A stretch of 64,000 bases of DNA, from the IMG/VR virus record IMGVR_UViG_3300027736_001324, positions 186,001 through 250,000 of that record; one strand, written 5' to 3'. The translations under genes were made by a program, and so were the position numbers. Below the pieces are notes generated by a model that was not told the DNA's origin, ran no database searches, and saw only the letters and a program-made list of their open reading frames with translations. This document shows, piece by piece, positions 13,482 to 46,448 of this stretch (the first letter of the stretch is position 1; each line of letters begins with the position of its first letter).

Positions 13482-13565
13482 ATGAGTTGGTTTAGACATA
13501 AGCCCCCAAAATATCCCCCTAAACCACAGAAGCCTGATCCCAAAAATGAACCTAAAAGAACTTAA
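13482..13565 (+). CDS. 27-aa Pro/Lys-rich micro-ORF
   Basis: MSWFRHKPPKYPPKPQKPDPKNEPKRT; ATG 5 nt after TAAATA; overlaps start of 13546 ORF. Confidence 0.45.
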   Translation: MSWFRHKPPKYPPKPQKPDPKNEPKRT

Positions 13566-16500
13566 TAGTTTTAAACTAAGTGACGCAGTTACATTCCACG
13601 ACAAACTTAACCCTAAGTTATGGAATAGCACTAAGTTGCGCCCAGATGTTAGAGAACGGCTATTAATAATAGCACAAGACTTTTTACAAGAATTAGGGGT
13701 AAACGATTTAGATGTTAAAGATATAACAATATCTGGCAGTAACGCAGCGTTTAGTTACACTAAGCATAGTGATTTGGATTTACATATATTAGTAGACATG
13801 GGTAACTTACCTGTAGATGAAGTATATAGAGAATTATTTACAGCAAAGAAAACAATATATAATGACACACATGACATAAGAATTCATACTATTCCAGTAG
13901 AATTATATGTACAGGATAGTAGACAACCTGTAGTAAGTTTAGGTGAATATAGTGTAATGAACGACCAGTGGATAAGAATACCCACTAAGCGTAGAAGTGA
14001 TTTTGACCAAACCGCCACCAAAAGCAAATATGAAAAGTTATTAAGTTTAATAGAGATCGCCCTCAAGTCAAAGAAGTATAGCAAAGTAAAACATATAATA
14101 GACACAATCAAAAGATATAGACAAGCAGGTTTAGATAAAGGTGGTGAGTTTGGTCCTGAGAATTTAGCATATAAGATGTTGCGTAGTCAGGGATATATTA
14201 CGAAGTTATATGATTTAAGAGACAAGTTACATAGTGAGAAGTTATCGTTTGAGACTATGTATCAGAATATAGATGAGAATGAAGAAACAAATCATTGGTA
14301 CGATGCTGGCGTGAAGGATGCTACTCGTGGTGCTAGACCTAATCCACGCACATATTTGCCAACACTTAAAGACAAGCAAGCAAAGCATCCAGAAGAAGTA
14401 TATTTTTATATGAATGGGTATAAAAGTGTTAAGCAAGGTGTGGCGGAAGGCTCCGAGAACAATAACCCAATAGCAAATAAAATATTCTTTGCTCGTAGTA
14501 ATAAAACACCCAAAGGATGGAGTTATGACCATGTGGGGTTTATAACTCAAGATGGAAAACAAATTCAAATGAGTGGGCATAAAGGCAATGATGTATATGT
14601 CACTAACGATGTGACTGATGATCCGGAGTTTCCCAAACAAAATATCAAAATTGTATCATTATCAAAACCAGTATCGGTTCCTACAACTAACTCAGTAGAA
14701 GCAGAAAATTGCGGAACATTTGTGGCAAATGTATTACGAGCCAATGGTATAAAAGATTTTGATACACAAAAACTATATAGTGTGTTCAAAAAGCCTCAAG
14801 AGCAAGGTGTGGCGGAAGATAAAGAAAATAACAATTCAAGATTAGATGAAATTTTATATAAGTTATGTAATATTGTTAAAAAAGAAATAAAAGAAAAGAC
14901 AGGGGAACACGCTGTTGCTGCTTGTATTATTGATCCTGATAACAGAATAGTAGCAAAAACAAGTAAAGACAAACACAGTAGATGGATTCATGCTGAACAC
15001 AATGCCATTGATACATATGAAAAAAAGTATGGTGAAGTACCAGAAGGCAGTATTATAGTAACTACATTAAGCCCCTGCAATGAATATGATGATAGAACCT
15101 CCGATGAAAGATTTGGTGAAAGTTGTACAGATTACATAAACAGCAAAGGCATTAAAAAAGTCTATTGTGGATATATGGATCCTACACAAGATAATTATAA
15201 CAGAGAATTTAATGTCATAGAAACTAGTGACACCGACCTTCGTAGGCAATGTAAACAGTTTGCTGATACTTTTTTGAAGAAAAATATAGATGAAGCGTTT
15301 GATACTCCACTTCCAATAACATGGGAGAAAGGTATGCATGGTGATATTGATGCACTTGCTAAATTACCCGATGGATCAAATTTAAGCATTATGTTTAATA
15401 AACAAGATAATATTAAACCTGATGACAAGACATGGATGGTTGAATTTTATAGAAACAACAGTCAAGAAGTAACAGGTGAGGGTGACGCACAAAAAGTATT
15501 TTCTACTGTGCTAGTTGCTATTCAACAATTCATTAAAAAATACAAACCACTAAAAATCTATTTCTCAGCAAGCAAAGAGATGGATCCGACTATAAATTAC
15601 GGCCCAGATGATGTTGTGCCTAATCCTGAAAGCCGTGCTAAGTTATATGATAGAATGGTACTGCGTTATGCTAAATCTTGGGGATATAAGTTTTTCCGTG
15701 CTGATAACGGTTCTTCTGTTATATATCAATTGTCAAGAATACCAAAACAAACGGCTGTGGGTGAAGATTACACCATGCAATTTGCTGCTGAAAAAACTCC
15801 ACCAGTAAGTCCCTATGCCGGCGTTAAAGATAATCAATATCGTGGTGGAATAAGTGAAGCCTCTGGTAAAAAAATCAGTTTCAAAGTACAAAAAGGCAAT
15901 GGAAAATTCTCTACCACTTTAACTGTTAACAATACACCAGCTGGAATATATCAATATGACAGTAACACTGGGCGTAGCATTGCTGAAGTTTATCCAGAAT
16001 TCAAAGGAAAAGGACTAGGTAAATTATTAGTTTTACATGCTATCTACACCGCAGCAAAATTAGGATTAGATTTCCAAGAAGATGAATCAAGAACCAGTGC
16101 TTATGATAATGTGTTAGATAGTTTAAGCAGCAACGGTTATATTGTAGATGATGATGGATATTGGTATGTTACAGGTGACGGGGAGCAATATCTAAAACAA
16201 GCATTGAACGAAGCAAGTGGGTATATCCCAAGCGAAAAAACTCCTGCAATAAATCCATACGGCGGTCTTAAAGATAACCAATTTCGTGGTGGGATAAGTG
16301 AAGCAGTTTCTCCTAAATATGTAACTAGAGTTGATATGACACCCATTAAAGATTTTGAATCTGGTATGAAAACATATTATGGAACAGATGATTGGCATGA
16401 AAGCGGGTTAGAAAAGAAAGATAACTTCACACAAGAAATGAAGGGTTTATATGCAGGTGAACCACATCGTACAGCATTATATGCTAGTGGCAATGCAAGT

Positions 16501-17001
16501 AAAACTAGATTCTTAGAATTGAATGATCCTAAAACAGGTCAACCTGTCGTATATTTTGATAAGAAAGATATCCCTAGAATTCGCAACACAAAGACATATG
16601 TTAGTGTGTTTGATGCTAGTAGATTTAAAAAGTTACCAACAGGGGAATACTTTAGTGAGAACCCTGGTAAACCATTGAAACAAGAAGAAATAACCGATCC
16701 TTTCAAGTATATGACGAACAATGGTTGGGTAGTAAGAGTAACTGATGATATTCAAAAAGAATTCAAAAAGGCACAACAACTACATAAAGCAGGCAAGATA
16801 GACCATTATGGTGGTGAAAACTTGACGGAAGCAAGTGGGTATATCCCAAGCGAAAAACAAAAGAATGATCCTAGATATAGCACCGCACTAACAATAGATG
16901 TACACCCAGATTCTATAAAAAAGAACGCAAAAGCCTTCTATTGGAACACCAGTAGAGCAGGAATCCCCCCAACTGCTAAAGCAAACGGCAAAATCTATTA
17001 A
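13546..17001 (+). CDS. multi-module polyprotein: Pol-beta nucleotidyltransferase, permuted NlpC/P60-like, Zn deaminase, GNAT and unknown modules
   Basis: GSNA..DLDLH..VELYVQD; DHVGF..NCGTFV; HAE..PC..C; VYPEFKGKGLG; modules joined at xxE and QGVAE repeats. Confidence 0.8.
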   Translation: MNLKELNSFKLSDAVTFHDKLNPKLWNSTKLRPDVRERLLIIAQDFLQELGVNDLDVKDITISGSNAAFSYTKHSDLDLHILVDMGNLPVDEVYRELFTAKKTIYNDTHDIRIHTIPVELYVQDSRQPVVSLGEYSVMNDQWIRIPTKRRSDFDQTATKSKYEKLLSLIEIALKSKKYSKVKHIIDTIKRYRQAGLDKGGEFGPENLAYKMLRSQGYITKLYDLRDKLHSEKLSFETMYQNIDENEETNHWYDAGVKDATRGARPNPRTYLPTLKDKQAKHPEEVYFYMNGYKSVKQGVAEGSENNNPIANKIFFARSNKTPKGWSYDHVGFITQDGKQIQMSGHKGNDVYVTNDVTDDPEFPKQNIKIVSLSKPVSVPTTNSVEAENCGTFVANVLRANGIKDFDTQKLYSVFKKPQEQGVAEDKENNNSRLDEILYKLCNIVKKEIKEKTGEHAVAACIIDPDNRIVAKTSKDKHSRWIHAEHNAIDTYEKKYGEVPEGSIIVTTLSPCNEYDDRTSDERFGESCTDYINSKGIKKVYCGYMDPTQDNYNREFNVIETSDTDLRRQCKQFADTFLKKNIDEAFDTPLPITWEKGMHGDIDALAKLPDGSNLSIMFNKQDNIKPDDKTWMVEFYRNNSQEVTGEGDAQKVFSTVLVAIQQFIKKYKPLKIYFSASKEMDPTINYGPDDVVPNPESRAKLYDRMVLRYAKSWGYKFFRADNGSSVIYQLSRIPKQTAVGEDYTMQFAAEKTPPVSPYAGVKDNQYRGGISEASGKKISFKVQKGNGKFSTTLTVNNTPAGIYQYDSNTGRSIAEVYPEFKGKGLGKLLVLHAIYTAAKLGLDFQEDESRTSAYDNVLDSLSSNGYIVDDDGYWYVTGDGEQYLKQALNEASGYIPSEKTPAINPYGGLKDNQFRGGISEAVSPKYVTRVDMTPIKDFESGMKTYYGTDDWHESGLEKKDNFTQEMKGLYAGEPHRTALYASGNASKTRFLELNDPKTGQPVVYFDKKDIPRIRNTKTYVSVFDASRFKKLPTGEYFSENPGKPLKQEEITDPFKYMTNNGWVVRVTDDIQKEFKKAQQLHKAGKIDHYGGENLTEASGYIPSEKQKNDPRYSTALTIDVHPDSIKKNAKAFYWNTSRAGIPPTAKANGKIY
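14434..14451 (+). repeat. QGVAEG junction repeat copy 1
   Basis: CAAGGTGTGGCGGAAGGC. Confidence 0.95.
14803..14820 (+). repeat. QGVAE junction repeat copy 2
   Basis: CAAGGTGTGGCGGAAGAT. Confidence 0.95.
15790..16304 (+). repeat. 71-bp imperfect direct repeat flanking GNAT module
   Basis: 15790-15860 vs 16234-16304 (EKTPxxxPYxGxKDNQxRGGISEA). Confidence 0.9.
16210..16857 (+). repeat. 30-bp perfect direct repeat
   Basis: GAAGCAAGTGGGTATATCCCAAGCGAAAAA (EASGYIPSEK) at 16210-16239 and 16828-16857. Confidence 0.95.
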
Positions 17002-17022
17002 GTTTCCATATTGTGGTATTTT

Positions 17023-17030
17023 GATAAATA
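17023..17030 (+). promoter_or_regulatory. T4-like late promoter
   Basis: GATAAATACTCTAT identical to 10108-10121. Confidence 0.65.
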
Positions 17031-17053
17031 CTCTATAACTTTGGGAAACCGTC

Positions 17054-18616
17054 ATGAGATTTAAGCAAATAGTAGAAAATTCAACAACAGCAGGATCAGT
17101 CGCAACCGTAGCACAGCCTATGATGACTCAAACCCGTGAAAGTGTAGATGTCAAGGGACTAAAGCCCGTAAAACAATTAATGAAGGGCACTAAAAAGAAA
17201 GGTCCCTACGCTAATAGTATTGTTGAAGGAAAAGTTAAAGAACTTATCAGCGATTTAAAAAACTTAACTTCTTATGATTTTGAAAAGAAACACAAACAAT
17301 CTAAGGCTGACGTTAGAGCCGACATGAAGAAAGTCACCGAAGATGATCTTTCAGAACAAGACTTAATCGTTATCCCAGGACAAGGTAGACTAAGAGGTAC
17401 TGGATTTACAAAGCATGACCCTGATCGTGCTGAACATGAAGGTCAAACACTAAAGAATAGTTTACACACTATCATTCGTTTAGCAACTCATTTAGACAAA
17501 GAATTAACAGTAAGAGATAACTTCCCAGAATGGGTGTCAGAGAAAGTCGGTTCAATCAAGGGTGACATGCTTTCTGTAATGAACTATATAATCAGCAGCC
17601 AAGAAATGCGACATGATCCAGATACTATAAATGAACTCAGTTCTGCTCTGTTACAAACAGCCGCACAAGCTGCTACAGACAAACGTAATCAAGCAATGGA
17701 TCCCGAGTTACATAATGCATTAGGTGGCGGCTATATGAATCCATTAGCAAAACATTATGATAATGTATCACAAAAAATGGACAATAGGGCAGCACAAGTA
17801 AAAAGAAAAGAAACGATACAAAATATCGCTTCTAAAATCGCTTCTCCGGCGGTGATGCGTAAGATGGGTATGAATGAAGGCTCACAACGAGTTGATTCAA
17901 TTGTTACTGACGCATTACGAGTAATGAAGGGTCCAGAAGTAAGTGATGCTGTACTAGCATTAAAGAGAGTATTAGGCGACAGAGCATATAATGAGCGCCG
18001 CGGCTTTTATAGTTTCTATGTTGATCAAATACATGATATGTACGGTCAGCAAGGCGTGGCGGAAGGCGAGTTAGAAGAAGATTTAAGCCGTAGAGGATTT
18101 TTAAGAGGCTTGGGCGCGGCAACGTTAGGTGCTACAGCATTAGGTGCTGCAAGTAAAGCACAGGCAAGTCAAGATTTAGGAAACGGATTTGTTTTAACCA
18201 CTGTTGACGTTTTTGGTGGAAAATTTAAAGCAGTATTAGATACACAATCTGATATACATTATTTGCCAAATCGTCACGAAGGCGGTGGCGCTATTGTTAG
18301 AAGCATGGCTCCTTTTATTATGATAAAGAACGGTCAGACAAACACTGCTATGAATGTTGGGCCAGCTGTTCAGGCTGCATTAAAGAAAGCTGGACTATTG
18401 AAAGGTGTAGAAGAAGGTGTTAAAGAAGGCAAAATTGACTTTGCTAAGAAATTACAAAAGAATGTAGATAATCATAACAAAGCTGTAGTACAAACTAAAA
18501 AAGCTGTAGGTAGCAGAATTTCTGACATTGGCGCCGGCGGCAAAGAATACAATGTAAAGACTGATGCTGCATGGGATGCTGCTAAGAAAAAAGTTAGTGA
18601 AGGTTTAAGGAAATAA
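17054..18616 (+). CDS. multi-module putative internal head protein with internal Tat-signal module
   Basis: MRFKQIVE start, xxE-delimited modules, QGVAEG then SRRGFLRGLGAA...AQA. Confidence 0.7.
   Translation: MRFKQIVENSTTAGSVATVAQPMMTQTRESVDVKGLKPVKQLMKGTKKKGPYANSIVEGKVKELISDLKNLTSYDFEKKHKQSKADVRADMKKVTEDDLSEQDLIVIPGQGRLRGTGFTKHDPDRAEHEGQTLKNSLHTIIRLATHLDKELTVRDNFPEWVSEKVGSIKGDMLSVMNYIISSQEMRHDPDTINELSSALLQTAAQAATDKRNQAMDPELHNALGGGYMNPLAKHYDNVSQKMDNRAAQVKRKETIQNIASKIASPAVMRKMGMNEGSQRVDSIVTDALRVMKGPEVSDAVLALKRVLGDRAYNERRGFYSFYVDQIHDMYGQQGVAEGELEEDLSRRGFLRGLGAATLGATALGAASKAQASQDLGNGFVLTTVDVFGGKFKAVLDTQSDIHYLPNRHEGGGAIVRSMAPFIMIKNGQTNTAMNVGPAVQAALKKAGLLKGVEEGVKEGKIDFAKKLQKNVDNHNKAVVQTKKAVGSRISDIGAGGKEYNVKTDAAWDAAKKKVSEGLRK
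18050..18067 (+). repeat. QGVAEG junction repeat copy 3
   Basis: CAAGGCGTGGCGGAAGGC. Confidence 0.95.
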
Positions 18617-18617
18617 T

Positions 18618-21293
18618 ATGAAAACAAATGAATTTTTAACAGAATTATCTAACGACAAGTTAGGAAAGTACAAAACCGCTGCAGGAAAAGATGCTACTGC
18701 TGCTGATAAAGCTGGTAATTTTAAGCGCGGCAATAAGCGTATGAGTGGCATTACCAATGCAACTAAAAAAGAATTTGCAAATGATGCTAAAAAGGTATCA
18801 GAAAGTAAGCAATTTGTTTTAAATGAATCTTTATTAATGGAAGATCCCATTTATCGTCAATTTAAAAGTGTAAGTAAGTATATTGCTGAACGTAGACTTA
18901 GCAAACAAGAAATCTATCAAATATTTGCTGATGCTGAAACCGGCATGACAAGTAAAGATACTGGTGCTAATCGTACAATGCTTGGCCGTGGTAAAGATGT
19001 AACAGGTAAAGCAGTTACCAGTGTTAAAGATGCTGTATCAGGTGTTTTAAACTCTATACAATCTTCTGCTCCAGTAGCAGCCGTTGATGTTGCATATGAT
19101 CAAGCTACAGCTGCCTTAGGAAAATTAACCGGCGGAGATAAAAGCAAGATAATGAAATCTATCATTGGATATCGTAATCTTGCTAAACAATATCCTAAAA
19201 CAGCAGGATTTGCTAAAGCAGCATTGGTTGCTGCTGTAGGACTTGCTACCGGTGGAGCAGGACTACCTGCTATTGCAGGTTTAACTTATGCACTTGATTC
19301 TGCAATTAGAGGCGATAAGTTATCAAGTGTAATTGGTAAGGGTGCCGGCGCTGCTGCGTTAGCATACGGTGGACAAGCTGCGGCACAATATGCTCAAGGT
19401 GGCGCTGATATTCCAGGAGCAAATCCACATCAACTTGATCCGTCACAAATGCAACAAGGCCCAGGTGGTGGAGGAGGTGGCGGTGCAGGTGGTGCTGATA
19501 TTCCTGGAGCAAATCCACATCAATTAGATCCATCACAAATGCAATCAGGATCCGGTGGTGCTGATATTCCTGGAGCGAACCCGCATCAATTAGATCCGTC
19601 ACAAATGCAACAAGCAGCAGGCGGTTATAAGGAAGTAATAAAGACAGTAGCAAAAGGAGATACATTAAGTAATATTGCTCAACAATACGAAACTAGTGTT
19701 GAAGCATTAATGAGAGCAAATCCTCAAATAACAAATCCCGATGCTTTAGCAATAGGAACTAAACTTAATATACCTCCAGTAAATGCTGATACTTATCTGC
19801 AAGGTGTAGGTACTGCTGCTGATACTGCTGCCAAAACTGCGTCTGGCGCATATGATAGTGTACCGGCTGCATTAGGTAAACAAGCAGCAGCCAATCGTGC
19901 CGGTGTTACTGAAAGTATTTGGAAAAATCATTCTCCTAAACTAGATAAAAACATTATAGAATCTATTAATTTTAAAAAGTTATCAGCATATGATTTAATA
20001 GACAAGAAAACTACTGCGTTCAACTGGGCATTAAATGAAAGTATTGGTAATAAAAATAGAAATATAAATTTAACTACAGTAGGGGTATATACTATATTTG
20101 AAAATGTTGACCGTTACCGTCTTGCTGTAATGGAAGTAGCAGGAGTTCCGGGCAGCACTCGTCCAGAGCAGTATCGTCCAGATGAGCCGGAAGGTAAAGG
20201 TAAGGAAAGCAAACCAGGTTTAATTGGTAGAGGACTTAATTGGTTAGACAAAACTGCCGGCAAAGTAGGCGGCGCATTAAGTAATTTTGGACATCAGTTC
20301 ACTACAAACGTTACAAAAGAAAAACTAAAAATGAATTGGACTCAAAAAGGTGAGCCAAGTGATTCAGATGAAGTAGCGGCTTTTATGAAAAGTCAAGGTG
20401 TACCAGAAGATGTAATTTCAACAGTATACACAAAGATGGGTCTACCTTTTACTATGACTCCCGCTGCAGCCGCAACTGCCCCGGCGGCAAACACAGGATC
20501 AACAAGTGCTAATACTAGTGGTGCTGGTGCAGGCGCATTTAGTTCAATGGCAAATCAATTACCTAAATCAACTAATACATCATCTACTGGCGGCACAACT
20601 ACAAATACATCAACTGGATTAACACATACAAGCAAAGCAGTTGCACCAACATCAGGTGGTGCAGGTGGGACAAGTAGTGTAGGCGGTATGTCACAACCAT
20701 CACAGCCTAATAGTCCTAGTCAACAACAAGCAGTGGCTCGCACAGTAAGACAACAGATTGATGACATTATGCATACCATAATGACTCAACATAATGACGA
20801 CCAACCATCATTAGTAAAATATTTGCGCCAACGTCTTGATAGTAGTTTTCCCGGTGATGCTACAAACGCAGCAGCACCAAAAAGAGCAGCACCTAAAAAA
20901 GCAGCACCTAAAAAAGCAGCGCCCAAAACAGCAGCACCTAAAGGCAAAAAACCTGACAACACAGTAGCGATGCCAAAACGTGAAAAATTCCGTATAGGCA
21001 AAGACGAAATCAAACCCGATAATCCCATGTATGATAAAATTAAGGCCGCTAGCGGGACAAATGAATCATTAGGATTAAACTATCCAGAAACATATGAACA
21101 AACTAATGATAAATTTAAAAGCAAAGGTCAACGTAGAGTTGCTGCACTAACCAATGAAGAAGAAAAACAACGTTTAGATCCTAAATGCTGGACTGGTTAT
21201 AAAAAGCAAGGCACTAAGATGAAGGGTGGTACTAGAGTTAATAACTGTGTCCCAATAAAAGAATCAGCAATATTACAAGGCTTAAGAGGATAA
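18618..21293 (+). CDS. multi-module putative virion/ejection protein with LysM domain
   Basis: MKTNEFLTE start, Gly/Ala hydrophobic segment, LysM (VAKGDTLSNIAQQY...NPQITNPDALAIGTKLNIP), AAPKK repeats, KCWTGY..NCVP module. Confidence 0.72.
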   Translation: MKTNEFLTELSNDKLGKYKTAAGKDATAADKAGNFKRGNKRMSGITNATKKEFANDAKKVSESKQFVLNESLLMEDPIYRQFKSVSKYIAERRLSKQEIYQIFADAETGMTSKDTGANRTMLGRGKDVTGKAVTSVKDAVSGVLNSIQSSAPVAAVDVAYDQATAALGKLTGGDKSKIMKSIIGYRNLAKQYPKTAGFAKAALVAAVGLATGGAGLPAIAGLTYALDSAIRGDKLSSVIGKGAGAAALAYGGQAAAQYAQGGADIPGANPHQLDPSQMQQGPGGGGGGGAGGADIPGANPHQLDPSQMQSGSGGADIPGANPHQLDPSQMQQAAGGYKEVIKTVAKGDTLSNIAQQYETSVEALMRANPQITNPDALAIGTKLNIPPVNADTYLQGVGTAADTAAKTASGAYDSVPAALGKQAAANRAGVTESIWKNHSPKLDKNIIESINFKKLSAYDLIDKKTTAFNWALNESIGNKNRNINLTTVGVYTIFENVDRYRLAVMEVAGVPGSTRPEQYRPDEPEGKGKESKPGLIGRGLNWLDKTAGKVGGALSNFGHQFTTNVTKEKLKMNWTQKGEPSDSDEVAAFMKSQGVPEDVISTVYTKMGLPFTMTPAAAATAPAANTGSTSANTSGAGAGAFSSMANQLPKSTNTSSTGGTTTNTSTGLTHTSKAVAPTSGGAGGTSSVGGMSQPSQPNSPSQQQAVARTVRQQIDDIMHTIMTQHNDDQPSLVKYLRQRLDSSFPGDATNAAAPKRAAPKKAAPKKAAPKTAAPKGKKPDNTVAMPKREKFRIGKDEIKPDNPMYDKIKAASGTNESLGLNYPETYEQTNDKFKSKGQRRVAALTNEEEKQRLDPKCWTGYKKQGTKMKGGTRVNNCVPIKESAILQGLRG
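19398..19613 (+). repeat. three coding repeats GGADIPGANPHQLDPSQMQ
   Basis: Copies start at 19398, 19488, 19554. Confidence 0.9.
20871..20945 (+). repeat. five 15-bp AAPK(K/R/T/G) tandem repeats
   Basis: GCAGCACC(T/A)AAAAAA-type units. Confidence 0.9.
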
Positions 21294-21295
21294 TT

Positions 21296-21736
21296 ATGTT
21301 AACAGAAGATTTAAAAGTGTTATTGGCAAGTGTTAACTCATTATCCATCAAAGCACAAAACTTTCATTGGAATGTAGAGGGAGATAACTTCCCTCAATAT
21401 CACGAATTCTTTGGCAACTTCTATGAAGAAATATACAGTTCAGTAGATAAAATTGCTGAATACATTCGTACATTAGACAGTTATAGTCCTGGCAGCTTAA
21501 CACGCTATGCTGAATTAACTATCATTCAAGATCAACTTAAGATTCCACGTGCTGAATTAATGTTTGCTGAATTGTATGAAGATAATGCTAGAATGATTGA
21601 TTTGCTTAATCATTGCTTTGCTTCTGCTACACAAGAAAATAAACAAGGTATCGCTAACTTTATTGCTGAAAGGTTAGATGCTCACGAAAAACATCAATGG
21701 ATGGTTCGTAGTGTTCTAAAGAAAGCCCGTGCATAA
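21296..21736 (+). CDS. dps: Dps/ferritin-like protein
   Basis: HWNVEG..F...H..F...Y, DKIAEYIR, HEKHQWM. Confidence 0.9.
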   Translation: MLTEDLKVLLASVNSLSIKAQNFHWNVEGDNFPQYHEFFGNFYEEIYSSVDKIAEYIRTLDSYSPGSLTRYAELTIIQDQLKIPRAELMFAELYEDNARMIDLLNHCFASATQENKQGIANFIAERLDAHEKHQWMVRSVLKKARA

Positions 21737-22290
21737 TGAGAGCAAGAGAGTTTTTATCTGAGTCCTATCGCTCGGGTATAAATGAAGAACTCAGGGTCGA
21801 TGTGCCTAACGAAGAATGGTTACAAGACGCAATTGACTATGCTAAAAGTAAAAGTCCCGATCGCAATGGTCTACCTTACATGGGAAAGACCACTGCTACA
21901 GTTAGGAACGTTGTGGTTCCGGTCAGCATATTAAGACGGATACCAGGCATGCGTCAAGAGCAATCAAAGGTAAGACACCACGATCTTGCTGCTATTAGAA
22001 AAATTATGCACACTACAGGTAAACTGCCATTACACGGACATACTGGACAAGAATATAAACCTTTTATTAATGTAGCATATGATGGTAGTGCTTGGGTCAA
22101 TGAAGGTAATCATAGGATCATGGCTGCGGCCGAACTTGGTTGGGAGTCATTGCCAGTGGAAATTTCATACTTTGACGGCGGTGAAAGAATCAAGTCAGGT
22201 CCAATGTATCCGGGTAAGATTGGGCTTGCAGAAGCAATGGATCAAGGAACTAGATGGACCGGTGATGAACCATATAGACAAACGGATTAA
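21736..22290 (+). CDS. ParB/Srx-like domain protein with capsid-targeting-like N-terminus
   Basis: EGNHRIMAAAELGWESLPV; starts MRAREFLSE. Confidence 0.7.
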   Translation: MRAREFLSESYRSGINEELRVDVPNEEWLQDAIDYAKSKSPDRNGLPYMGKTTATVRNVVVPVSILRRIPGMRQEQSKVRHHDLAAIRKIMHTTGKLPLHGHTGQEYKPFINVAYDGSAWVNEGNHRIMAAAELGWESLPVEISYFDGGERIKSGPMYPGKIGLAEAMDQGTRWTGDEPYRQTD

Positions 22291-23676: not shown

Positions 23677-23694
23677 ATATTTGATAAATACATA

Positions 23695-34418: not shown

Positions 34419-34446
34419 ATGTAAGCAGCACAACGGTTGCTTACAT
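34419..34446 (+). promoter_or_regulatory. 5' leader hairpin upstream of folE
   Basis: ATGTAAGCA/TGCTTACAT 9-bp stem right after GATAAATA. Confidence 0.55.
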
Positions 34447-34481
34447 TTCAAAACACAAACCATCACAAAGGAAGGTTATCT

Positions 34482-37191: not shown

Positions 37192-37192
37192 A

Positions 37193-37260
37193 TATAACCG
37201 GTCTCTTATGGGCTCATCCCGGTATACAAATTCTGCGTCCTATGCTATAATAACATAGGA
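37193..37260 (+). promoter_or_regulatory. structured leader upstream of queD
   Basis: ACCGG/CCGGT stem, then TCCTATG/CATAGGA stem covering the SD AGGAG. Confidence 0.5.
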
Positions 37261-37267
37261 GAACATC

Positions 37268-37741
37268 ATGGCAAAATATATTTCAACAAAGACTTACAAG
37301 CAGATAGGTCCAGTAGCTTATCGTCAATGGCGTGCAGATAGTCATTGCAATCTAATACATGGCTACGCACTTTCATTTCATTTTGAATTTGAAGCTGATA
37401 CATTAGATGCCCGTAATTGGGTAACAGACTTTGGTGGACTAAAGCCTCTAAAATCTGTATTAGAAGATTGGTTTGATCATACATTACTAGTCGCACAAGA
37501 TGACCCAATGCGTGAACATTTACTTGAGTTGGGTAGACTTAAGCTAGCAAAGATTACAGAAGTTGAAAAGACTGGCTGTGAGGGTATTGCTGATTTCTTA
37601 TACGAATACATTAACACTATTCTATTGCCTAGCTTTGGTGCTAGTGAAGCAGAACGTGTTTGGTGTAGCAAAGTAGAAGTAAGAGAAACAGATGCTAACA
37701 TGGCAATGCGTGTTGGGCATAGAGAAGATAGGGAGTTTTAA
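37268..37741 (+). CDS. queD: 6-carboxytetrahydropterin synthase
   Basis: SHCNLIHGY, WVTDFGGLK, FDHTLL, GCEGIA, VEVRET. Confidence 0.88.
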   Translation: MAKYISTKTYKQIGPVAYRQWRADSHCNLIHGYALSFHFEFEADTLDARNWVTDFGGLKPLKSVLEDWFDHTLLVAQDDPMREHLLELGRLKLAKITEVEKTGCEGIADFLYEYINTILLPSFGASEAERVWCSKVEVRETDANMAMRVGHREDREF

Positions 37742-37745
37742 TAAT

Positions 37746-38519
37746 ATGTCTATTAATAACATGAAATCGCCAATTAATTATTTCCCACTTAAAGTGGGAA
37801 ACACTGAATTAAAAAAAATTAGAAATACGTTTAGTCTACATGATATTAATCAAAAATGGATGGGATATAATCTAGAAAATAAAGAAAATAAAGAAAATGA
37901 TTGGCAGGCACATTGGCAGGCACGTGAATTTTTTATAGAATTAGAATTGGCGTACGGCAAATGTGTTACTAGTGGACTGGGATTAGGAGTAATACAAACT
38001 TTATTAGCGGAGAAAGATAACGTTACTGAAGTAATTGTATATGAAAAAAATCCAGATGTTATTGAAATGTTTAAAATTTTAGCCGAGAAATCAAATATTG
38101 ATACTTCTAAAATCGTAATAATAAATGAAGATGCGAATAATATAAAAAATATTACATGTGATTGTTTATTTTTGGATCATTTTGAATATGAACCCTTTAG
38201 TGAAATAGAAGAAACAGTTAAAAGAATAGCTTCTCAAAATACAATCAATATAGTATGGTTTTGGCCTGCATGGCGTGTGTTTTCACTATATTGTATAGAT
38301 ACGAATAAAGAGATAAATGAAAATTCTTTTTTAGAATGGACATCAACTTTAAACATATCTAAATTTCCAAACCAGATACCATCTCACTTGTTTGATAATT
38401 TAATTGAATTTATTAATCCTATTTGGGATAACTTAAACGCACCAAACAAACATAAAATTGAAGCAAATAAACAGAAGAATGAGTTAATTAATTTTTTTAA
38501 AAAACGCAATACAAATTAA
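37746..38519 (+). CDS. class I SAM-dependent methyltransferase-like (spermidine-synthase-like)
   Basis: TSGLGLG, VIVYEKNPDV, INEDA, LFLDH. Confidence 0.6.
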   Translation: MSINNMKSPINYFPLKVGNTELKKIRNTFSLHDINQKWMGYNLENKENKENDWQAHWQAREFFIELELAYGKCVTSGLGLGVIQTLLAEKDNVTEVIVYEKNPDVIEMFKILAEKSNIDTSKIVIINEDANNIKNITCDCLFLDHFEYEPFSEIEETVKRIASQNTINIVWFWPAWRVFSLYCIDTNKEINENSFLEWTSTLNISKFPNQIPSHLFDNLIEFINPIWDNLNAPNKHKIEANKQKNELINFFKKRNTN

Positions 38520-38534
38520 TTAAGGAACATATTA

Positions 38535-39383
38535 ATGGCAAAATTAAAAGTCGCAGAATTATTCTATAGCATTCAAGGTGAAGGTCGCTATATGGGCGTC
38601 CCTTCTGTCTTTCTACGCACATTTGGATGTAACTTCAAATGTGCAGGGTTTGGTATGCCTAAGGGCGAACTAAGCAAAGAAGTAGAAGATATCGCTAGTC
38701 GCATACATTACTATACTGATTATAAACAACTACCATTGGTCAGTACAGGCTGTGATAGTTATGCTAGTTGGGACCCAAGATTCAAAGACTTAAGTCCGAT
38801 GCTTGAAACAGATAGTATTGTTGATAGCATTATGGATATGCTACCACACAATCGTTGGTTGAGTGAACATCTTGTTATCACAGGCGGCGAACCATTATTA
38901 GGTTGGCAACGTAGTTATGTTGATTTGCTTTCACATGAAAACATGCGCGGATTACAAGAATTAACTTTTGAAACTAACGGAACACAAGAATTGCAACAAG
39001 ACTTAAAAATCTTTTTACATAAATGGTGTATCAGTCGTAGCATGGGTGCAATAACATTTAGCGTCAGTCCTAAACTAAGTATCAGCGGAGAGAAGTGGGA
39101 AGAAGCAATAAGACCTGAAGTTGTATATGAATATACTCAAGTGGGTCATGTATATCTTAAATTTGTTGTAGCAAACAAACAAGACGTAGAAGAAGCACAA
39201 GAAGCGGTTAATGAATACAGTAAGCGTGGCTTTAGAGGTCATGTATATTTGATGCCTTGCGGCGGTGTTGAAAGTTTATATAATATGAATGCTAGAACAG
39301 TTGCTAATGAAGCAATGCGTTTAGGCTGGCGTTATAGTGATAGACTTCAGGTACCTCTTTTCAAGAACGCATGGAATACTTGA
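38535..39383 (+). CDS. queE: 7-carboxy-7-deazaguanine synthase (radical SAM)
   Basis: ELFYSIQGEG, FLRTFGCNFKC...CDS, TGGEP, ETNGT, SVSPKL. Confidence 0.92.
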   Translation: MAKLKVAELFYSIQGEGRYMGVPSVFLRTFGCNFKCAGFGMPKGELSKEVEDIASRIHYYTDYKQLPLVSTGCDSYASWDPRFKDLSPMLETDSIVDSIMDMLPHNRWLSEHLVITGGEPLLGWQRSYVDLLSHENMRGLQELTFETNGTQELQQDLKIFLHKWCISRSMGAITFSVSPKLSISGEKWEEAIRPEVVYEYTQVGHVYLKFVVANKQDVEEAQEAVNEYSKRGFRGHVYLMPCGGVESLYNMNARTVANEAMRLGWRYSDRLQVPLFKNAWNT

Positions 39384-41271: not shown

Positions 41272-42089
41272 AAAAAGTATTAATAACAGGTAACAGTGGT
41301 TACATCGGTAGTCATCTTAGTAAGATGCTACGCACAGATTATCAAATATATGGATTGGATATTAATCCATCACAATACTCCGTTACCGATCATTATCAAC
41401 TCAATATCAATAAGGTGTTTAATATTGATATGGAATTTGACGCAGTAATTCATTTAGCAGCATTAGTTAATGTTAGTGAAAGTGAAAGAATGCCCATTCA
41501 ATATTACATCACTAACTTAAATGGTACAATGAATGTTATCAATAAAGTAAAGACAAAGAACTTTATCTTTGCTAGCACTGGTGCTGCACAAGATTGTGAA
41601 AGTGCATATGGTATCAGTAAACGTGCTGCTGAGGATGTGGTGCGTGAGTATTGTACAGTACACAATCCCAAAGATTACACTATCTTTAGATTCTATAACG
41701 TAATCGGTAGTGATGGGTTTGCGCCAACTAATCCAGACGGATTGATGTATAACCTGATGAAGGCTAAAGAGAGAGGCGAGTTTACTATCTACGGTACTGA
41801 CTATGGTTCAAGTGACGGTACTTGTGTGCGTGATTACGTTCATGTTAATGAGATATGTGACGCATTATCTAGTGCTATTGAAAAGCCAAGCAATCAGATA
41901 GAATGCTTGGGGCATGGAGTTGGACATTCAGTTAGAGATATTGTTAATCTATATAAAAAGGTTAACAACGTTGAATTTCTAGTAAAGCACGGACCAAGAA
42001 GAAAGGGTGACTTAGCAGTATCTGTATTAGATAATGTGTCACCCTATATGAAAGAGTTATACTCTTTGGAAGAACTACTTAAGGTCTAA
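41268..42089 (+). CDS. NAD-dependent epimerase/dehydratase (GalE-like)
   Basis: ITGNSGYIGSH, HLAA, YGISK (YxxxK), FRFYNV, RDYVHV. Confidence 0.92.
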   Translation: MKKVLITGNSGYIGSHLSKMLRTDYQIYGLDINPSQYSVTDHYQLNINKVFNIDMEFDAVIHLAALVNVSESERMPIQYYITNLNGTMNVINKVKTKNFIFASTGAAQDCESAYGISKRAAEDVVREYCTVHNPKDYTIFRFYNVIGSDGFAPTNPDGLMYNLMKAKERGEFTIYGTDYGSSDGTCVRDYVHVNEICDALSSAIEKPSNQIECLGHGVGHSVRDIVNLYKKVNNVEFLVKHGPRRKGDLAVSVLDNVSPYMKELYSLEELLKV

Positions 42090-42461
42090 AAACTTTATTT
42101 GGTTTGTTGAAAACACAACATACCAAACATCATCTCCCTCATCGTGTTCAGCAATGATACTATCATATCCGTCTGCTATTAATTCTTCACGTAGTTCTAA
42201 ATAATCTTCTTTCTCTAGTCCTACTAACTCATCCATTGTTGCTTCATATGTCTTGTTCATGGTCAATGACGCAGATATGATATATTTTCCGTATAGTTTT
42301 GCTTCACGAATAGAAGTAGTAAAAAAATGTCCTAGTACAGCATTTGGATCTCCTGTACTAGTTCCTAGCGTAGCATTATCAAATGACGAGAATTTATTGT
42401 TAGTACCGTGATAGGCAACAACACCCGAACTACTTTCAGCAATAAATTCTCTTGCTCTCAT
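42075..42461 (-). CDS. ADP-ribosyltransferase (ART-PolyVal-like) with capsid-targeting-like N-terminus
   Basis: MRAREFIAE; YHGT, GHFFT, AKLYG, GYDSI, YVVF..NQIK. Confidence 0.8.
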   Translation of the reverse strand: MRAREFIAESSSGVVAYHGTNNKFSSFDNATLGTSTGDPNAVLGHFFTTSIREAKLYGKYIISASLTMNKTYEATMDELVGLEKEDYLELREELIADGYDSIIAEHDEGDDVWYVVFSTNQIKFLDLK

Positions 42462-42462
42462 T

Positions 42463-43971
42463 TTAGTGTCTTAACAATAGTGTACTTAATACACCAGGAT
42501 CGTTAGCACTAACATCACCTTCGCCCGGAGCAACAATAACATTGTACTTCATTCCAGTTGGGATTGAATTTCTCTTAGCCATATATTCAGTATAACTTAA
42601 AATACTTGAAGCACTGATTCCATATTCTGTAGCAATACGTTGTTTCATTTCTTTAAGTGCGGCTTCATCAGCAGGTTGCCATGCTCCGTCATCAGTTTTC
42701 TTCAAGTTACCCTTCTCATCCTTAGCTAACAAGTCATAGAATAGTTTCTCTGGAACAATACGACTATTCTTTGTTGTATCTAATTTAGGGTCTTGCGCCT
42801 TTATTTTCTTCTCTTGCTCAGTGTTAGCACCTTCGCTCCAATTGATAATAAAGTTGTCTGGTTTCTTAGCTAATGCTGCTCCAGCCATCTTAGTGTAAGC
42901 ATAGAACTTAACATCAGGGTGTTTAGCAGCCATCTTTAATGCCATGTCTAAATATTCTGGACTAAAGAAGTCACCGGCATCATGCCAACGAACTGTTGTT
43001 TGCCAACCATCAGGGAATTTCTTATCACCCTTTGCTCCTGCACTTGCTTCTTTTGATATCTCACTACTTAATTGATTAAAGAATCCATCAGGATCATTCA
43101 ACAGATATGTTAATATACGACCATCACTTTGCCATGCTGCTTTAAACTGAATCTTACCGCCCTTCATAGCAAAGCATTCTACTTTACATGAACCTGCACC
43201 CGGGCAAGTATTAACAATGATTAATTTATTGGTTTGTTCATCAAGTGCAATTCCTACTAATGCCGCAAATCCAACATTGAAGAATTGTTCAAACTCTCCG
43301 TTACTATGCTTCATCTTTTCATTTTGCTTTAATAATGATTTAGGACGAATTGCTAATGTTTGTTTAACTGCATCTTCATCATATGTTTTACCATCCGGAC
43401 TCATGTAAGTAACTACGCTACTACGATGGATGTAGGGCATTTTGTATTTGTCACCTTTGGTCTTGCCAGTAGTATACTTTTCGTTACCTTTTTTATCTAT
43501 TTTAACATTACCGCTTTTATCTAAATCAGGAGTACCAACGATACGCTTCATGTAATCTTGAAATTCTTGGCTATCCAAATCACGGGTTTGTGCTGGTAGT
43601 TTAGTTGCTTCATCTAGCCCAGATAGACTACGAATTCTATCTAAGTGTTCCGAGCCTTCCGCCACACCTTTGCGATAATCTGGAAATCCAAACTTGCGAT
43701 AGTATGCTAATGCGTGACCAAACATCTTTTTGTATTCTTCAGTACCCTTTTTGTAACCTTTTGTAGCCAACTCATTTTCAATATGACGAACCATTGGCAT
43801 CTCTGCTTTTAGTAATTCTGGAGCACCTTCCGCCACACCTTGTTCTGATTCTTCATCAGGTTTTGAATCACCTGCACTAGCAACAAATTGCTGAGGTGTC
43901 ATAATCTTTATGCCACTAGGGGCTCCTGGCATCTTTGGCTCTGCGCCCTCTAATAGTTCTTTAAAGTTCAT
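42463..43971 (-). CDS. modular protein with C-terminal GP88-like domain
   Basis: MNFKELLE, two GVAEG junctions, CPGAGSCKVECFA, VRWHDAGDF, YAYTK. Confidence 0.72.
   Translation of the reverse strand: MNFKELLEGAEPKMPGAPSGIKIMTPQQFVASAGDSKPDEESEQGVAEGAPELLKAEMPMVRHIENELATKGYKKGTEEYKKMFGHALAYYRKFGFPDYRKGVAEGSEHLDRIRSLSGLDEATKLPAQTRDLDSQEFQDYMKRIVGTPDLDKSGNVKIDKKGNEKYTTGKTKGDKYKMPYIHRSSVVTYMSPDGKTYDEDAVKQTLAIRPKSLLKQNEKMKHSNGEFEQFFNVGFAALVGIALDEQTNKLIIVNTCPGAGSCKVECFAMKGGKIQFKAAWQSDGRILTYLLNDPDGFFNQLSSEISKEASAGAKGDKKFPDGWQTTVRWHDAGDFFSPEYLDMALKMAAKHPDVKFYAYTKMAGAALAKKPDNFIINWSEGANTEQEKKIKAQDPKLDTTKNSRIVPEKLFYDLLAKDEKGNLKKTDDGAWQPADEAALKEMKQRIATEYGISASSILSYTEYMAKRNSIPTGMKYNVIVAPGEGDVSANDPGVLSTLLLRH
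43654..43842 (-). repeat. GVAEG junction repeats copies 4-5
   Basis: 43654-43671 (AAAGGTGTGGCGGAAGGC) and 43825-43842 (CAAGGTGTGGCGGAAGGT) on minus strand. Confidence 0.95.
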
Positions 43972-46448
43972 TTCTTATTGTTCCTAATGTATTGTTCAGC
44001 AAGCATTACTAATTCATGTAGTTCTTCAATGCTTTCGCAATGCCATCTACGCAAACTTTTATTTATATTGCTATTTGGATCGTGTGCTGTTTTTGCACCA
44101 GTACGATGTTTCTTCATTCCACGCATTCTAGCACAGAATGATTTACGACGGGCAGCGGCTTTGCTACCTTTTTTAAGTTTGCTTGGTTTAGTTGTTACTG
44201 CTGTTTGAATCTTGCTGCCTGGATGACTACGGCGATAACTGGCTACACTCTTTTTACTCATCCCACCTGCACGTTTATTATTGTGCTTTGACCAATTCTC
44301 GCCCTCATCAACTTCTTTCTTTGCCATGCCGATACCATCACAAGCACCGCATTTATACTTTTTAGCGCCCGGTACGTCATTAGCAGGAAGAATTTTTCCG
44401 TCAGGTGCTTTCCATAAAGTACCACGACCGTTACATCTTTTACAACTAGTATTAGGGTTCTTTACAGTGGCACCTGGCATGTAGTCACTCTTGCTGAAAC
44501 CGCCTGGCAAGCCTTCCGCCACACCTTGCTGACCCGGCACTGTATCAACAATGTTTATCATTTTATCAGGAACTATTTGTACAGGAACATTGCCGTTGTA
44601 TCCGGCGGCTTGGTATGCGATAAATCTATGATTCCCATCTATTACAAAAAGTTTACCCTTGTTATTCCAAACAACTAACGGACCTAATTTCCCATTTTGT
44701 TTTAGTTGTGGTAAAAGATGGTTATTGACCCATTGAGCAACCTTTGGATCCTTCATTGACTTACCATTTTCCCACATTTGTAATTTATTAAAAGGTGCCT
44801 CAGTTACTGGCAAACTTTTCTTTATCCTGTCATCAACAGTAGCACCTTTATAAGCAGGATTTGTATAGATAGTTACTAGTTGCTGTTCCAAGCCTTCCGC
44901 TACACCTTGCTGTTGTTCTGCCTTTACAAATTGATTGGGTCTTGGCATATCTAACCTGCGTGGATCATTCATTATGGCAGGATCTTGCATTAATTTGCTT
45001 TTAGGATTAATCCAGAATCCAACCATTGTTCCTTTTAAGGGTAATGAACCTTTTGGAACAACTACTGCTTCTTCAAATTCACCACCTGCTTTGGCAGTAG
45101 GTTCAGCATATTTTGCTTTGCCTTTTGCGTTAGTTCTTGCCATTGGGTCTGTGTTCTGTGACCGTGCTTCACCGTCTTTTTTTAGATACGGGTTAAATGC
45201 TAGACCTTTGATATTTGTACTTTGACTTGTACCTAGTGTTTTGAAATTGCTTTCGACTGCATTACGATCTAAAACTAGTATTGCATCTCTACCAATGCCA
45301 GCCATTTGATTGCTTGCATTTGATCCACTGGCATAGCCCCAATCTCTGGTCACGCTTACTGTAGGCAGTTTAGTCTGAGCCGAGGTTGCTGCCTGCGGAC
45401 TAGTTGCTGATCGGATACTACCGGACGATAGCATTCCTTTAAGACCGTTTGCATCCGTAGCATGATAAAGATAGTTTCCGCCTATACCTTCATTTAGCCC
45501 TTCCGCTACACCTTGCTTGTCAATACTTCCCCGTATACCGCATTTAGCACAATGATATTGTGTTAGCGTTGGGTGTTCTTTTTTCTTTACAGGACCATGG
45601 CAATGTGGGCAGGTACCTGTGGCCATTGCCTTGACTTCTTTACTCATATCTTCTTTGGAGCCTTCCGCCACACCTTTTGATGAAGCAGTTGGAGATTGCA
45701 GTGCCCTAGTTTTAACTCCAGGCATGCCACCTAATGTCGCTAATTTTTTAACCCAGCCTTCAGCGTCAGTATCATTAAGAGATGTAACTACAGTGCCATC
45801 GGGGTCAATAGAATCTATACCAGTAAGTTTATCGCTAGCATATCCTGTATTATCAAAATAATGTCCAGGTACTGTACCAACTTTATTAGAACGATCTAAG
45901 CGAGTTTTATACTCAGCATCCCCTTTTTGTTTGTGTACCTCTAAACCTTTAGAAATTGCTGCACGAACTTGTTGTTGTTGTGTGGTTTCAGTAGAGCCTT
46001 CCGCCACACCTTGTTCTTCAATATTAGGGTTATTGATTTGTTCTGCTACACTATTCAATTTGTCATTGCTAACTGTAACAAAACTATACATCCAACCATC
46101 TAAACTAACACCCTTATCTAATTGATTCTTAATATGTATAGCATTTTTAATAATTTCACGAATCTCGCCTTGAGCCATTCCATCAATTTGCTCATCTTCC
46201 ATAGCATAACCTTCGGTTTTGGGCTTCTTCCCAGCCTTTTTCATGGCAATGGCAATTGCGGCCTGTCGTTTTGGGTTAGCCGCTTCATCTGTTGCTGACT
46301 TTTTTAATGCATCCGCTGTTGGAGCACCTTTACTTCCGGGCTTACGCATATGTTCACCGGAACCATTCTTGATTCGGTCACGCTTGGCATGTATGTTTGC
46401 CCATAACCCAGGCTTTTTGTTTTCGGATATAATTTCACTAAATCTCAT
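43968..46448 (-). CDS. multi-module polyprotein: Zn ribbon, ART-like, ParB-like, CxxCxGxG and basic modules
   Basis: MRFSEIISE; five GVAEG junctions; CPHC..CAKC; LYHAT..SVTR..EEAV; IDGNHR; CKRCNGRG..CGACDGIG; RRKSFCARM. Confidence 0.8.
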   Translation of the reverse strand: MRFSEIISENKKPGLWANIHAKRDRIKNGSGEHMRKPGSKGAPTADALKKSATDEAANPKRQAAIAIAMKKAGKKPKTEGYAMEDEQIDGMAQGEIREIIKNAIHIKNQLDKGVSLDGWMYSFVTVSNDKLNSVAEQINNPNIEEQGVAEGSTETTQQQQVRAAISKGLEVHKQKGDAEYKTRLDRSNKVGTVPGHYFDNTGYASDKLTGIDSIDPDGTVVTSLNDTDAEGWVKKLATLGGMPGVKTRALQSPTASSKGVAEGSKEDMSKEVKAMATGTCPHCHGPVKKKEHPTLTQYHCAKCGIRGSIDKQGVAEGLNEGIGGNYLYHATDANGLKGMLSSGSIRSATSPQAATSAQTKLPTVSVTRDWGYASGSNASNQMAGIGRDAILVLDRNAVESNFKTLGTSQSTNIKGLAFNPYLKKDGEARSQNTDPMARTNAKGKAKYAEPTAKAGGEFEEAVVVPKGSLPLKGTMVGFWINPKSKLMQDPAIMNDPRRLDMPRPNQFVKAEQQQGVAEGLEQQLVTIYTNPAYKGATVDDRIKKSLPVTEAPFNKLQMWENGKSMKDPKVAQWVNNHLLPQLKQNGKLGPLVVWNNKGKLFVIDGNHRFIAYQAAGYNGNVPVQIVPDKMINIVDTVPGQQGVAEGLPGGFSKSDYMPGATVKNPNTSCKRCNGRGTLWKAPDGKILPANDVPGAKKYKCGACDGIGMAKKEVDEGENWSKHNNKRAGGMSKKSVASYRRSHPGSKIQTAVTTKPSKLKKGSKAAARRKSFCARMRGMKKHRTGAKTAHDPNSNINKSLRRWHCESIEELHELVMLAEQYIRNNKK
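44511..46013 (-). repeat. GVAEG junction repeats copies 6-10
   Basis: 44511-44528, 44892-44909, 45498-45515, 45660-45677, 45996-46013. Confidence 0.95.

Follow-up and report, generated by a model that had tools for sequence, protein, structure and literature searches.

A 64,000-nucleotide stretch of the IMG/VR virus record IMGVR_UViG_3300027736_001324 (positions 186,001 to 250,000, hereafter the window) encodes seven open reading frames (ORFs) that begin with a leader of 8-9 residues, M-[RKN]-x-x-[EDQ]-[FIL]-[ILV]-(x)-E, comparable to the capsid-targeting sequence (CTS) that T4 internal proteins carry, as well as ORFs in which unrelated modules are joined in frame by a stereotyped glutamate-ending linker with the core GVAE. 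We put the probability at about 0.5 that these genes encode T4-type capsid-targeted cargo, fused into polyproteins that would be cut after Glu by the prohead protease. The leader would then be a capsid-targeting propeptide that attaches the protein to the scaffolding core while the prohead assembles, and a gp21-type prohead serine protease would remove it by cutting after Glu in a hydrophobic-x-Glu (h-x-E) motif. The same protease would also cut QGVAE|G and similar h-x-E|[GSA] linkers lying in frame within the ORFs (the bar marks the proposed cut), turning each module into a separate small protein inside the head. The modules so released, which would include ADP-ribosyltransferase (ART)-fold, ParB-like nuclease, deaminase, nucleotidyltransferase, GNAT-like, GP88 and twin-arginine translocation (Tat) signal modules among others, would leave the head along with the DNA and act as soon as the next infection begins, and those with a Tat signal unmasked by cleavage would be exported to the periplasm. 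Since the linker is nearly identical at the DNA level (GGT GTG GCG GAA), it would also serve as a short homology patch for the exchange of modules between genes and between phages.

The source phage is, to judge from its genes, a large (jumbo) uncultivated member of the T4 superfamily. The window DNA polymerase (25217-27922) shows 43-48% identity to the polymerases of the jumbo myoviruses Phosso, Atu_ph07 and Vibrio phage 2.275.O and of the RaK2 group, and families annotated as "virion structural protein" in these phages are matched by ORFs 4518 and 5144. An earlier sequence-only reading of this DNA had placed the feature at 13546-46448; the part of this interval from 24.3 to 42.0 kb, about 18 kb of replication and metabolism genes (DNA polymerase, sliding clamp, GTP cyclohydrolase and others), does not belong to it.

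N-terminal leaders

Six of the N-termini quoted in the sequence-only reading were found exactly where it had located them. On the plus strand, ORF B (17054-18616, 520 aa) starts with MRFKQIVE|NSTTAG (leader at 17054-17077), ORF C (18618-21293, 891 aa), which begins 1 nt past the ORF B stop, with MKTNEFLTE (18618-18644), and ORF E (21736-22290, 184 aa), which contains a ParB-like nuclease module, with MRAREFLSE (21736-21762). The minus strand carries ORF K (42075-42461, 128 aa), with the leader MRAREFIAE (42435-42461) and an ART-PolyVal ADP-ribosyltransferase domain, ORF J (42463-43971, 502 aa), with the leader MNFKELLE (43948-43971) and a GP88 domain, and ORF I (43968-46448, 826 aa), with the leader MRFSEIISE (46422-46448). 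The seventh N-terminus, MLTEHIIIE, is likewise present, at the first ATG (23695) within a longer GTG-started ORF (23671); counted from this ATG, ORF H (23695-24279, plus strand) has 194 aa and includes an HExxH motif at 24130-24144. When the leader is defined strictly (M, 2-4 residues, E/D/Q, two hydrophobic residues, x, E), 4 of the 97 window gene starts conform, compared with a rate of 0.0006 at other ATG contexts (binomial P ~6e-7), and the three further window leaders are variants one residue shorter than this strict pattern.

The IPIII sequence cited in that reading was borne out by the T4 record, in which internal proteins IPII and IPIII both start with MKTYQEFIAE|A. Numbering residues backwards from the cut, with Glu as P1, the EFIAE (P5-P1) of the window leader MRAREFIAE is identical to that of IPII and IPIII. 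The window leader MLTEHIIIE parallels T4 gp22 (MLKEQLIAE|A), and MRFKQIVE|NSTTAG, with its homologues MRIQQILENSTTTG and MKINSLLESQT, parallels T4 gp24 (MAKINELLRE|STTT); the same record gives the starts of IPI (MKTFKEFTSTTT...ITE|A), gp67 (MEGLIE|A) and gp21 (MNEPQLLIE), the last of which is likewise similar to window leaders. IPIII needs no more than its first ten residues to be targeted to the head; among them, positions 4 and 7 are important for targeting and positions 8 and 10 for processing (PMC9026906). F7, I8 and E10 have counterparts in the window leaders and Y4 has none. The gp21 specificity assumed in the sequence-only reading, a cut after (I/L)-X-E, agrees with the same source. All seven window ORFs carry a leader of the T4 CTS type, which is an N-terminal propeptide of about 10-20 residues ending in L/I-X-E.

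Beyond the window, the strict leader is found in 42 of 103 ORF I homologues that have no N-terminal homology to ORF I itself, with near-variants in many more. A DNA pattern for MRAxEF[I/M]xE is present at more than 120 IMG/VR loci, where the leader logo reads M-R-A-x-E-F-I-x-E followed by S/G/A/D. These loci contain 226 leader ORFs with a median length of 130 aa, and two or more of them, often in tandem, are present at 69 of 116 loci; most leader proteins are therefore small and single-domain, like the T4 internal proteins. The GVAE polyproteins are a lineage-specific elaboration. In loci selected for GVAE, leaders and GVAE proteins also tend to occur together (odds ratio 5.9, P=5e-12).

It is highly improbable that the leader is instead a nucleic-acid or translation-initiation feature, such as a 5' coding region kept A-rich and unstructured, or that it resembles the T4 sequences by chance. 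Its codons are rich in A/T and the motif is short, as such an explanation would have it, but the amino-acid pattern is kept with varied residues and codons across hundreds of genes, and the enrichment at window gene starts, the association with GVAE proteins and the P5-P1 identity to IPIII all speak against it. A further candidate leader, MTRRIINE at the N-terminus of the virion-structural ORF 5144, was rejected as its GAP32 homologue lacks it.

Linkers, module borders and shared modules

The tetrapeptide GVAE occurs ten times in a six-frame translation of the window, always within four ORFs: in ORF A (13546-17001, plus strand) at 14437-14448 (KQGVAE|GS) and 14806-14817 (EQGVAE|DK), in ORF B at 18053-18064 (QQGVAE|GE), in ORF J at 43828-43839 and 43657-43668, and in ORF I at 45999-46010, 45663-45674, 45501-45512, 44895-44906 and 44514-44525. 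The linker peptide has the consensus x-[KEQ]-Q-G-V-A-E-G-[LS]-x-[ED] and its codons are nearly invariant; the 14-mer GGTGTGGCGGAAGG has 10 window matches with at most two mismatches, against 0.08 expected, and the exact 17-mer CAAGGTGTGGCGGAAGG is present in more than 120 IMG/VR contigs. At non-seed GVAE sites GGT is used in 94% of cases (43% in the background), GTG in 78% (21%) and GCG in 79% (10%), and the linker DNA is therefore conserved beyond the requirement of the peptide.

ORF A, a 1151-aa polyprotein that lacks a leader, is composed of nucleotidyltransferase-like, CHAP-like (weak), cytidine/dCMP deaminase, DUF6934-like, GNAT-like (weak) and DUF6886 modules together with short repeated spacer peptides. 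Its second GVAE linker is a homology-block boundary, as are the junctions AVGE|D (15754-15768), LNE|ASGYIPSEK (16204-16218), GISE|AV (16291-16308) and LTE|ASGYIPSEK (16822-16836), while 14 ends of high-scoring segment pairs cluster at NIDE|A (15283-15297) and GISE|AS (15847-15864) closes a repeated spacer peptide. This spacer of about 23 aa (EKTP..PY.G.KDNQ.RGGISE) is present in two copies (15769-15858 and 16219-16302, plus strand), and ASGYIPSEK likewise in two, directly behind LNE| and LTE|. If all sites were cut, the spacers and the ASGYIPSEK peptides would become free fragments. The modules of ORF I include Zn-ribbons, an ART-fold module, a ParB-like module and, behind the junction EVDE|G (44301-44315, minus strand), a C-terminal DUF6321 domain. 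Of all parts of the polyproteins, the DUF6321 module (44301-43968, minus strand) alone matches many cultured phages (354 records, from cyanophages, pelagiphages and roseophages), where it is usually a small separate protein.

The border motifs listed in the sequence-only reading (VAE, IDE, ISE, LNE, LTE and VDE), and VGE in addition, coincide with starts and stops of homology to related loci. BLAST blocks between ORF I and 119 homologues are bounded by the linkers (56 of them start at linker 313, and 48 stop at linker 515), and the syntenic loci of close relatives hold different module sets in the same slot. These boundaries, together with the near-invariant codons, support the suggestion of that reading that GVAE doubles as a recombination site. 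In an AlphaFold2 (AF2) model of ORF I the mean predicted local distance difference test (pLDDT) score is 58; all five linkers lie within or border coil of pLDDT <50, and the module between linkers 313 and 515 scores 85-96. A role of the linker as a 2A-like ribosome-skipping peptide was rejected since it has no NPGP-type motif.

Pfam searches of single modules gave mostly sub-threshold matches, and Foldseek with the whole 826-aa ORF I model returned only noise. Pfam-type searches found no peptidase family in the polyproteins; the sole candidate is the separate ORF H, which has no family match in such a search despite its HExxH motif. Some stand-alone cargo genes end shortly past a linker-like h-x-E, namely ORF E with the relic linker GLAE|A (22222-22236, plus strand), ORF B with KVSE|GLRK-stop (18590-18604) and a gene of the related contig L229 with SAAE|GKLIK-stop (~1075-1064), and many ParB-like homologues stop exactly at IGL or IGLA. 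Such endings suggest gene fission and fusion at linkers.

The key result is that leader and linker, as aligned in front of three independent module types, are interchangeable boundaries. The ParB-like module of ORF E has 508 relatives in a library of 1.8 billion proteins, in which it occupies N-terminal, internal or C-terminal positions in proteins of 103-4913 aa. A Glu is situated 3-7 residues upstream of the anchor VDVPN of this module in 86 of 102 proteins; P3 of these Glu sites is V/L/I/M/F in 71 of the 86 (background 24%) and the residue after the cut (P1') is G/S/A in 61. For example, the leader in MRANEFIVE|GTLSVDVPN stands in the same register as the linkers in TVTE|GTLSVDVPN and QGVAE|GLRVDVPN. 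Distant ParB-like homologues lie within giant polyvalent proteins of 2000-4900 aa without such a junction, which indicates that the junction is not part of the domain.

The commonest module (GGNYLYHAT...) is preceded by QGVAEG in 26 of its 55 contexts and is N-terminal in 4; the other 25 contexts mostly have variants in which Glu and the hydrophobic P3 are kept (GMAE, DVAE, DLAE, NFAE, PVDE, SVEE). Its AF2 model (pLDDT 74) gave structure matches to ART-fold proteins only (DarT, Tpt1/KptA, PARP), and these were weak (E 0.02-1, probability up to 0.84). Leaders and module junctions alike display the sequence pattern of gp21/S77-type substrates, a small or hydrophobic P3 and Glu at P1.

The third module type is a candidate Tat signal. 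In ORF B the motif SRRGFLRGLGAA...AQA (18086-18166, plus strand; type S/T-R-R-x-F-L-K, hydrophobic stretch, A-x-A) starts 7 residues past the linker Glu, and it recurs in 11 contexts; its Pfam TAT_signal match has E=0.12, below threshold. Tat signals (RRGFLRGLGAA...) begin 2-7 residues past GVAE| in ORF B and three other proteins, and are also found behind variant linkers and directly behind leaders, as in MRATEFVTE|MDRRGFL and MRASEIIAE|DLTRRGFL. The Tat signal of ORF B is buried behind 340 residues and becomes N-terminal only if the linker is cut, so that it should work only if freed; we regard it as the best in silico argument for cleavage.

These observations bear on the notion that the ORFs encode uncleaved multi-domain polyvalent proteins, with QGVAEG a flexible linker and recombination patch whose Glu is incidental. 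The near-invariant linker codons and the breaks of homology blocks at linkers would fit this notion well, and some classical polyvalent proteins, for example the virion RNA polymerase of phage N4, are delivered uncut (PMC5512222). We nevertheless consider it distinctly unlikely. Diverged linkers (GMAE, DLAE, NFAE, PVDE, GVTE, SVSE, LDE and others) keep Glu and the hydrophobic P3, which points to selection on the peptide, a Tat signal past residue 340 of a 520-aa protein would be non-functional unless freed, and the same modules exist as stand-alone leader genes with the leader Glu in the register of the linker Glu.

Genomic context and promoter-like motif

In the related contigs L229 and L221, genes for the portal, an acidic core protein, a gp21-like protease, the scaffold and the major capsid protein (MCP) are followed by one 497-aa ORF and then by six co-oriented leader genes. 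One gene of this array (MRAIEFIIE, 160 aa) shows 63% identity to ORF E over its full length, and another has its homologue in the DUF6934-like module inside ORF A. Contigs L028, L012 and L048 have the same head module, and here the slot is taken by a polyprotein whose junctions read GVAE|G, VAE|G, MAE|G and ITE|A. In related phages the slot among the late head genes is thus occupied by separate leader genes or by a linker polyprotein. The MCPs of L229, L221 and L012 are 79-91% identical to that of L028, and the L229 MCP shows 67-71% identity to its counterparts in Vibrio phage 2.275.O, Phosso and PA5oct, the same closest cultured clade as that of the window polymerase. Vibrio phage 2.275.O has no MRAxEF gene array beside its MCP gene. 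Between the MCP gene and the linker polyprotein of L028 lies a GIY-YIG homing-endonuclease-like ORF (7870-8592), in the place that segD occupies in T4, where it follows gene 23.

The genes with leaders had been described in the sequence-only reading as late-promoter genes. Only ORFs B, H and I have the motif GATAAATA directly upstream, and the other leader genes are located inside operons; the label depends on this T4-late-promoter-like motif. The copy at 17023-17030 (plus strand) lies 23 nt upstream of ORF B, that at 23683-23690 (plus strand) ends 4 nt before the ATG of ORF H at 23695, and that at 46504-46511 (minus strand) lies 55 nt upstream of ORF I. Seven copies are present in the window (4505, 10108, 17023, 23683, 34408, 46511 on the minus strand, and 55329), all on the sense strand and 4-66 nt upstream of where an ORF begins (a single site would be so placed by chance with a probability of 0.04); six of the seven read TGATAAATA. 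GATAAATA is also found before the virion-structural ORF 4518 and before the gene that opens the L229 leader array, and in Vibrio phage 2.275.O TATAAATA stands in front of the MCP gene and of a core gene. The motif is consistent with a T4-type late promoter. The classical late promoter TATAAATA was rejected as a candidate in the window, where it is neither enriched nor placed at these genes, and scans of the window for sigma-70 promoters and terminators did no better than on shuffles. Tandem stop codons were rejected as an explanation of TGATAAATA, as the motif lies inside a reading frame at 55329. A 55-aa ORF starting MAQIVEDVIV at 10133-10300 (plus strand), with a GGAG ribosome-binding site and GATAAATA upstream, had escaped the greedy ORF call, in which it is hidden by a spurious minus-strand ORF.

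Cleavage at the same Glu sites might alternatively take place in the cytoplasm of the infected cell, with products that act in the same cycle, without being packaged or injected; the cuts would be made by free prohead protease, by some other protease of the phage (e.g. the HExxH ORF H) or by a host enzyme, and the leader a mere processing or recognition peptide. Leaderless polyproteins that still have linkers (ORF A and the NMNAT fusions), the position of the window cargo genes among replication genes, and Tat modules, which make sense if they are produced and exported in the same cell, favour such a scheme. To our knowledge a zincin-type HExxH protease is not expected to select Glu at P1, which counts against ORF H as the enzyme, as does its lack of a family match. 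The leader is, moreover, conserved well beyond a minimal h-x-E and matches T4 targeting residues, including F7 of IPIII, and in related contigs leader-gene arrays lie directly downstream of the head-gene cluster. Phage prohead proteases are reported to activate immunity by the cyclic-oligonucleotide-based antiphage signalling system (CBASS; PMC12991175), which would imply a non-virion substrate and suit cytoplasmic cleavage. On balance we hold cleavage for use in the same cycle to be unlikely.

Several observations weigh against cleavage and packaging in the head. In the window the cargo genes are surrounded by replication genes and not by head genes, and the prohead protease and MCP genes of the phage itself lie outside the 64 kb. 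ORF A and the NMNAT-headed homologues of ORF I (P0014, P0025, P0043, P0086) have linkers but no leader, and targeting by the leader can therefore not be universal; ORF A also has no GATAAATA upstream. Three copies of GATAAATA lie just 4-5 nt from an ATG (4518, 23695, 55341), an odd position for a promoter that would imply leaderless mRNAs or a non-promoter role. If a protein made late and targeted to the head carries a Tat signal, it may be exported by the cell that produces it, and recombination by itself could account for the strongly conserved linker codons. Among 50,697 records of cultured phages, no match was obtained for ORF K, ORF B or the ART-fold module by tblastn. Megablast of 13546-21293 against these records also gave no match, and tblastn of ORFs I and A found single domains only (DUF6321 and nucleotidyltransferase, in cyanophages, pelagiphages, Maribacter phages and Lak phages); by these searches leader and linker are absent from the cultured phages, and the system is therefore not tied to any phage with a virion proteome.

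Other genes of the window lie close to the cargo or recall parts of it. The leader-gene operon also holds a ferritin/Dps-like gene (21296-21736) and a DNA/RNA non-specific endonuclease gene with a Sec signal (22297-23112), both on the plus strand and without a leader. ORF C has a LysM domain and, directly upstream of it (19398-19610, plus strand), three copies of the 19-aa unit GGADIPGANPHQLDPSQMQ, which suggests an extended, peptidoglycan-binding protein. A cytidylyltransferase/NMNAT-like ORF at 11116-12459 (plus strand) starts with MSTIVVMPGGFHPFHA, lacks a leader and has a possible junction TLDE|S near aa 199. In many ORF I homologues, the four leaderless ones named above among them, an NMNAT-like domain comes first and is followed by GVAE-linked modules, and this ORF therefore belongs to the same mosaic pool.

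Further away, a DnaJ-like ORF adjoins a 753-aa Clp/Hsp100-like ORF (6334-9398, plus strand; judged by N-terminal sequences only); AAA+ chaperones have been speculated to help protein entry into jumbo-phage heads (PMC7824862). A PP-loop ATPase gene is close to the polymerase (24306-24914, plus strand), and the region 34437-39383 (plus strand) contains a GTP cyclohydrolase gene and ORF 38535, whose N-terminus resembles a radical-SAM enzyme by eye. Together these three genes hint at a 7-deazaguanine (queuosine-type) DNA-modification pathway.

Known systems and significance

The closest precedents are the T4 internal proteins IPI, IPII and IPIII and Alt, which share with the ORFs described here a short N-terminal propeptide ending in hydrophobic-x-Glu, variable and unrelated cargo behind a conserved leader, an ADP-ribosyltransferase among this cargo and a T4-superfamily background. 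Unlike them, the window ORFs have many domains fused in frame, up to 1151 aa, with repeated internal sites; their leader is one residue shorter, some polyproteins are leaderless, many phages share the conserved linker DNA, and they are known from sequence alone. Modular shuffling in phage genomes is also driven by short conserved boundary sequences such as the PeSL cassettes of T4, in which breakpoints of recombination likewise fall on short repeats between modules, but these repeats are intergenic and regulatory, whereas the repeat described here is part of a reading frame and may double as a protease site. The MARTX toxins likewise combine several effector domains in one polypeptide and release them by proteolysis of linkers after delivery. 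They are, in contrast, bacterial and secreted, with their own cysteine protease domain that cuts after Leu, involve no capsid and have no homology to the proteins of the window.

Polyvalent proteins are multi-domain proteins of phages and conjugative elements predicted to be injected, with ART-PolyVal, ParB-like and deaminase domains among their cargo (PMC5512222). Both ORF A and ORF I contain at least two conflict-type domains in one phage polypeptide, by which polyvalent proteins are recognised, and the strings of conflict-type enzymes (ART-PolyVal, ParB-like, deaminase, GNAT, nucleotidyltransferase), the extreme mosaicism and the predicted entry into the host with the DNA are common to both. 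For classical polyvalent proteins, autoprocessing by embedded zincin-like or other peptidases, which are frequent but not obligatory, or intact delivery has been proposed; the window polyproteins have no embedded peptidase, and instead a stereotyped Glu-ending linker and a T4-type leader. Head-internal proteins of phiKZ, 201phi2-1 and SPN3US are cut by a gp21-like protease on the C-terminal side of Glu in S/A-X-E or A-X-E (PMC5694885, PMC10052503). These ejection and inner-body proteins resemble ours in their three-residue Glu motif, in having multiple sites per protein and in propeptides thought to target the prohead, but the propeptides are mostly longer than 100 residues, cutting removes them and does not separate effectors, and both the P3 preference and the lineage differ.

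The CTS and internal proteins of T4, the specificity of gp21, the processing of ejection proteins in giant phages (PMC5694885, PMC10052503) and the polyvalent proteins (PMC5512222, PMC7824862) are known already. In the literature that we searched (on GVAEG, on polyproteins of phages in connection with the prohead protease, and on how jumbo phages target proteins to the capsid) we found no description of a T4-type leader on polyvalent-type cargo, of in-frame effector polyproteins with a stereotyped Glu-ending linker, of linker DNA conservation across many phages, or of Tat signals behind leaders or linkers.

Should the ORFs indeed encode head-processed cargo, it is conceivable, and we propose it tentatively, that an uncultivated clade of T4-related jumbo phages has turned its internal-protein system into combinatorial cargo, with dozens of anti-host domains carried in polyproteins, a 12-nt/4-aa GVAE element acting as both head-protease site and swap patch, and some modules whose Tat signals stay masked until the head protease cuts, so that an injected protein could be re-exported to the periplasm of the new host. 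This element would be a concrete case of dual coding, in which one short sequence is selected as a peptide signal and as a recombination site. Leaders and linkers would also be natural, portable tags for capsid targeting and cleavage, of use for protein packaging in non-model phages, and with the combination of leader and h-x-E junctions one could catalogue the injected proteins of uncultivated phages, which form the first line of counter-defence. If the proposal is true, tailed phages can deliver whole sets of pre-made effectors as protease-cut polyproteins, a strategy that has so far been linked to RNA viruses and some bacterial toxins.

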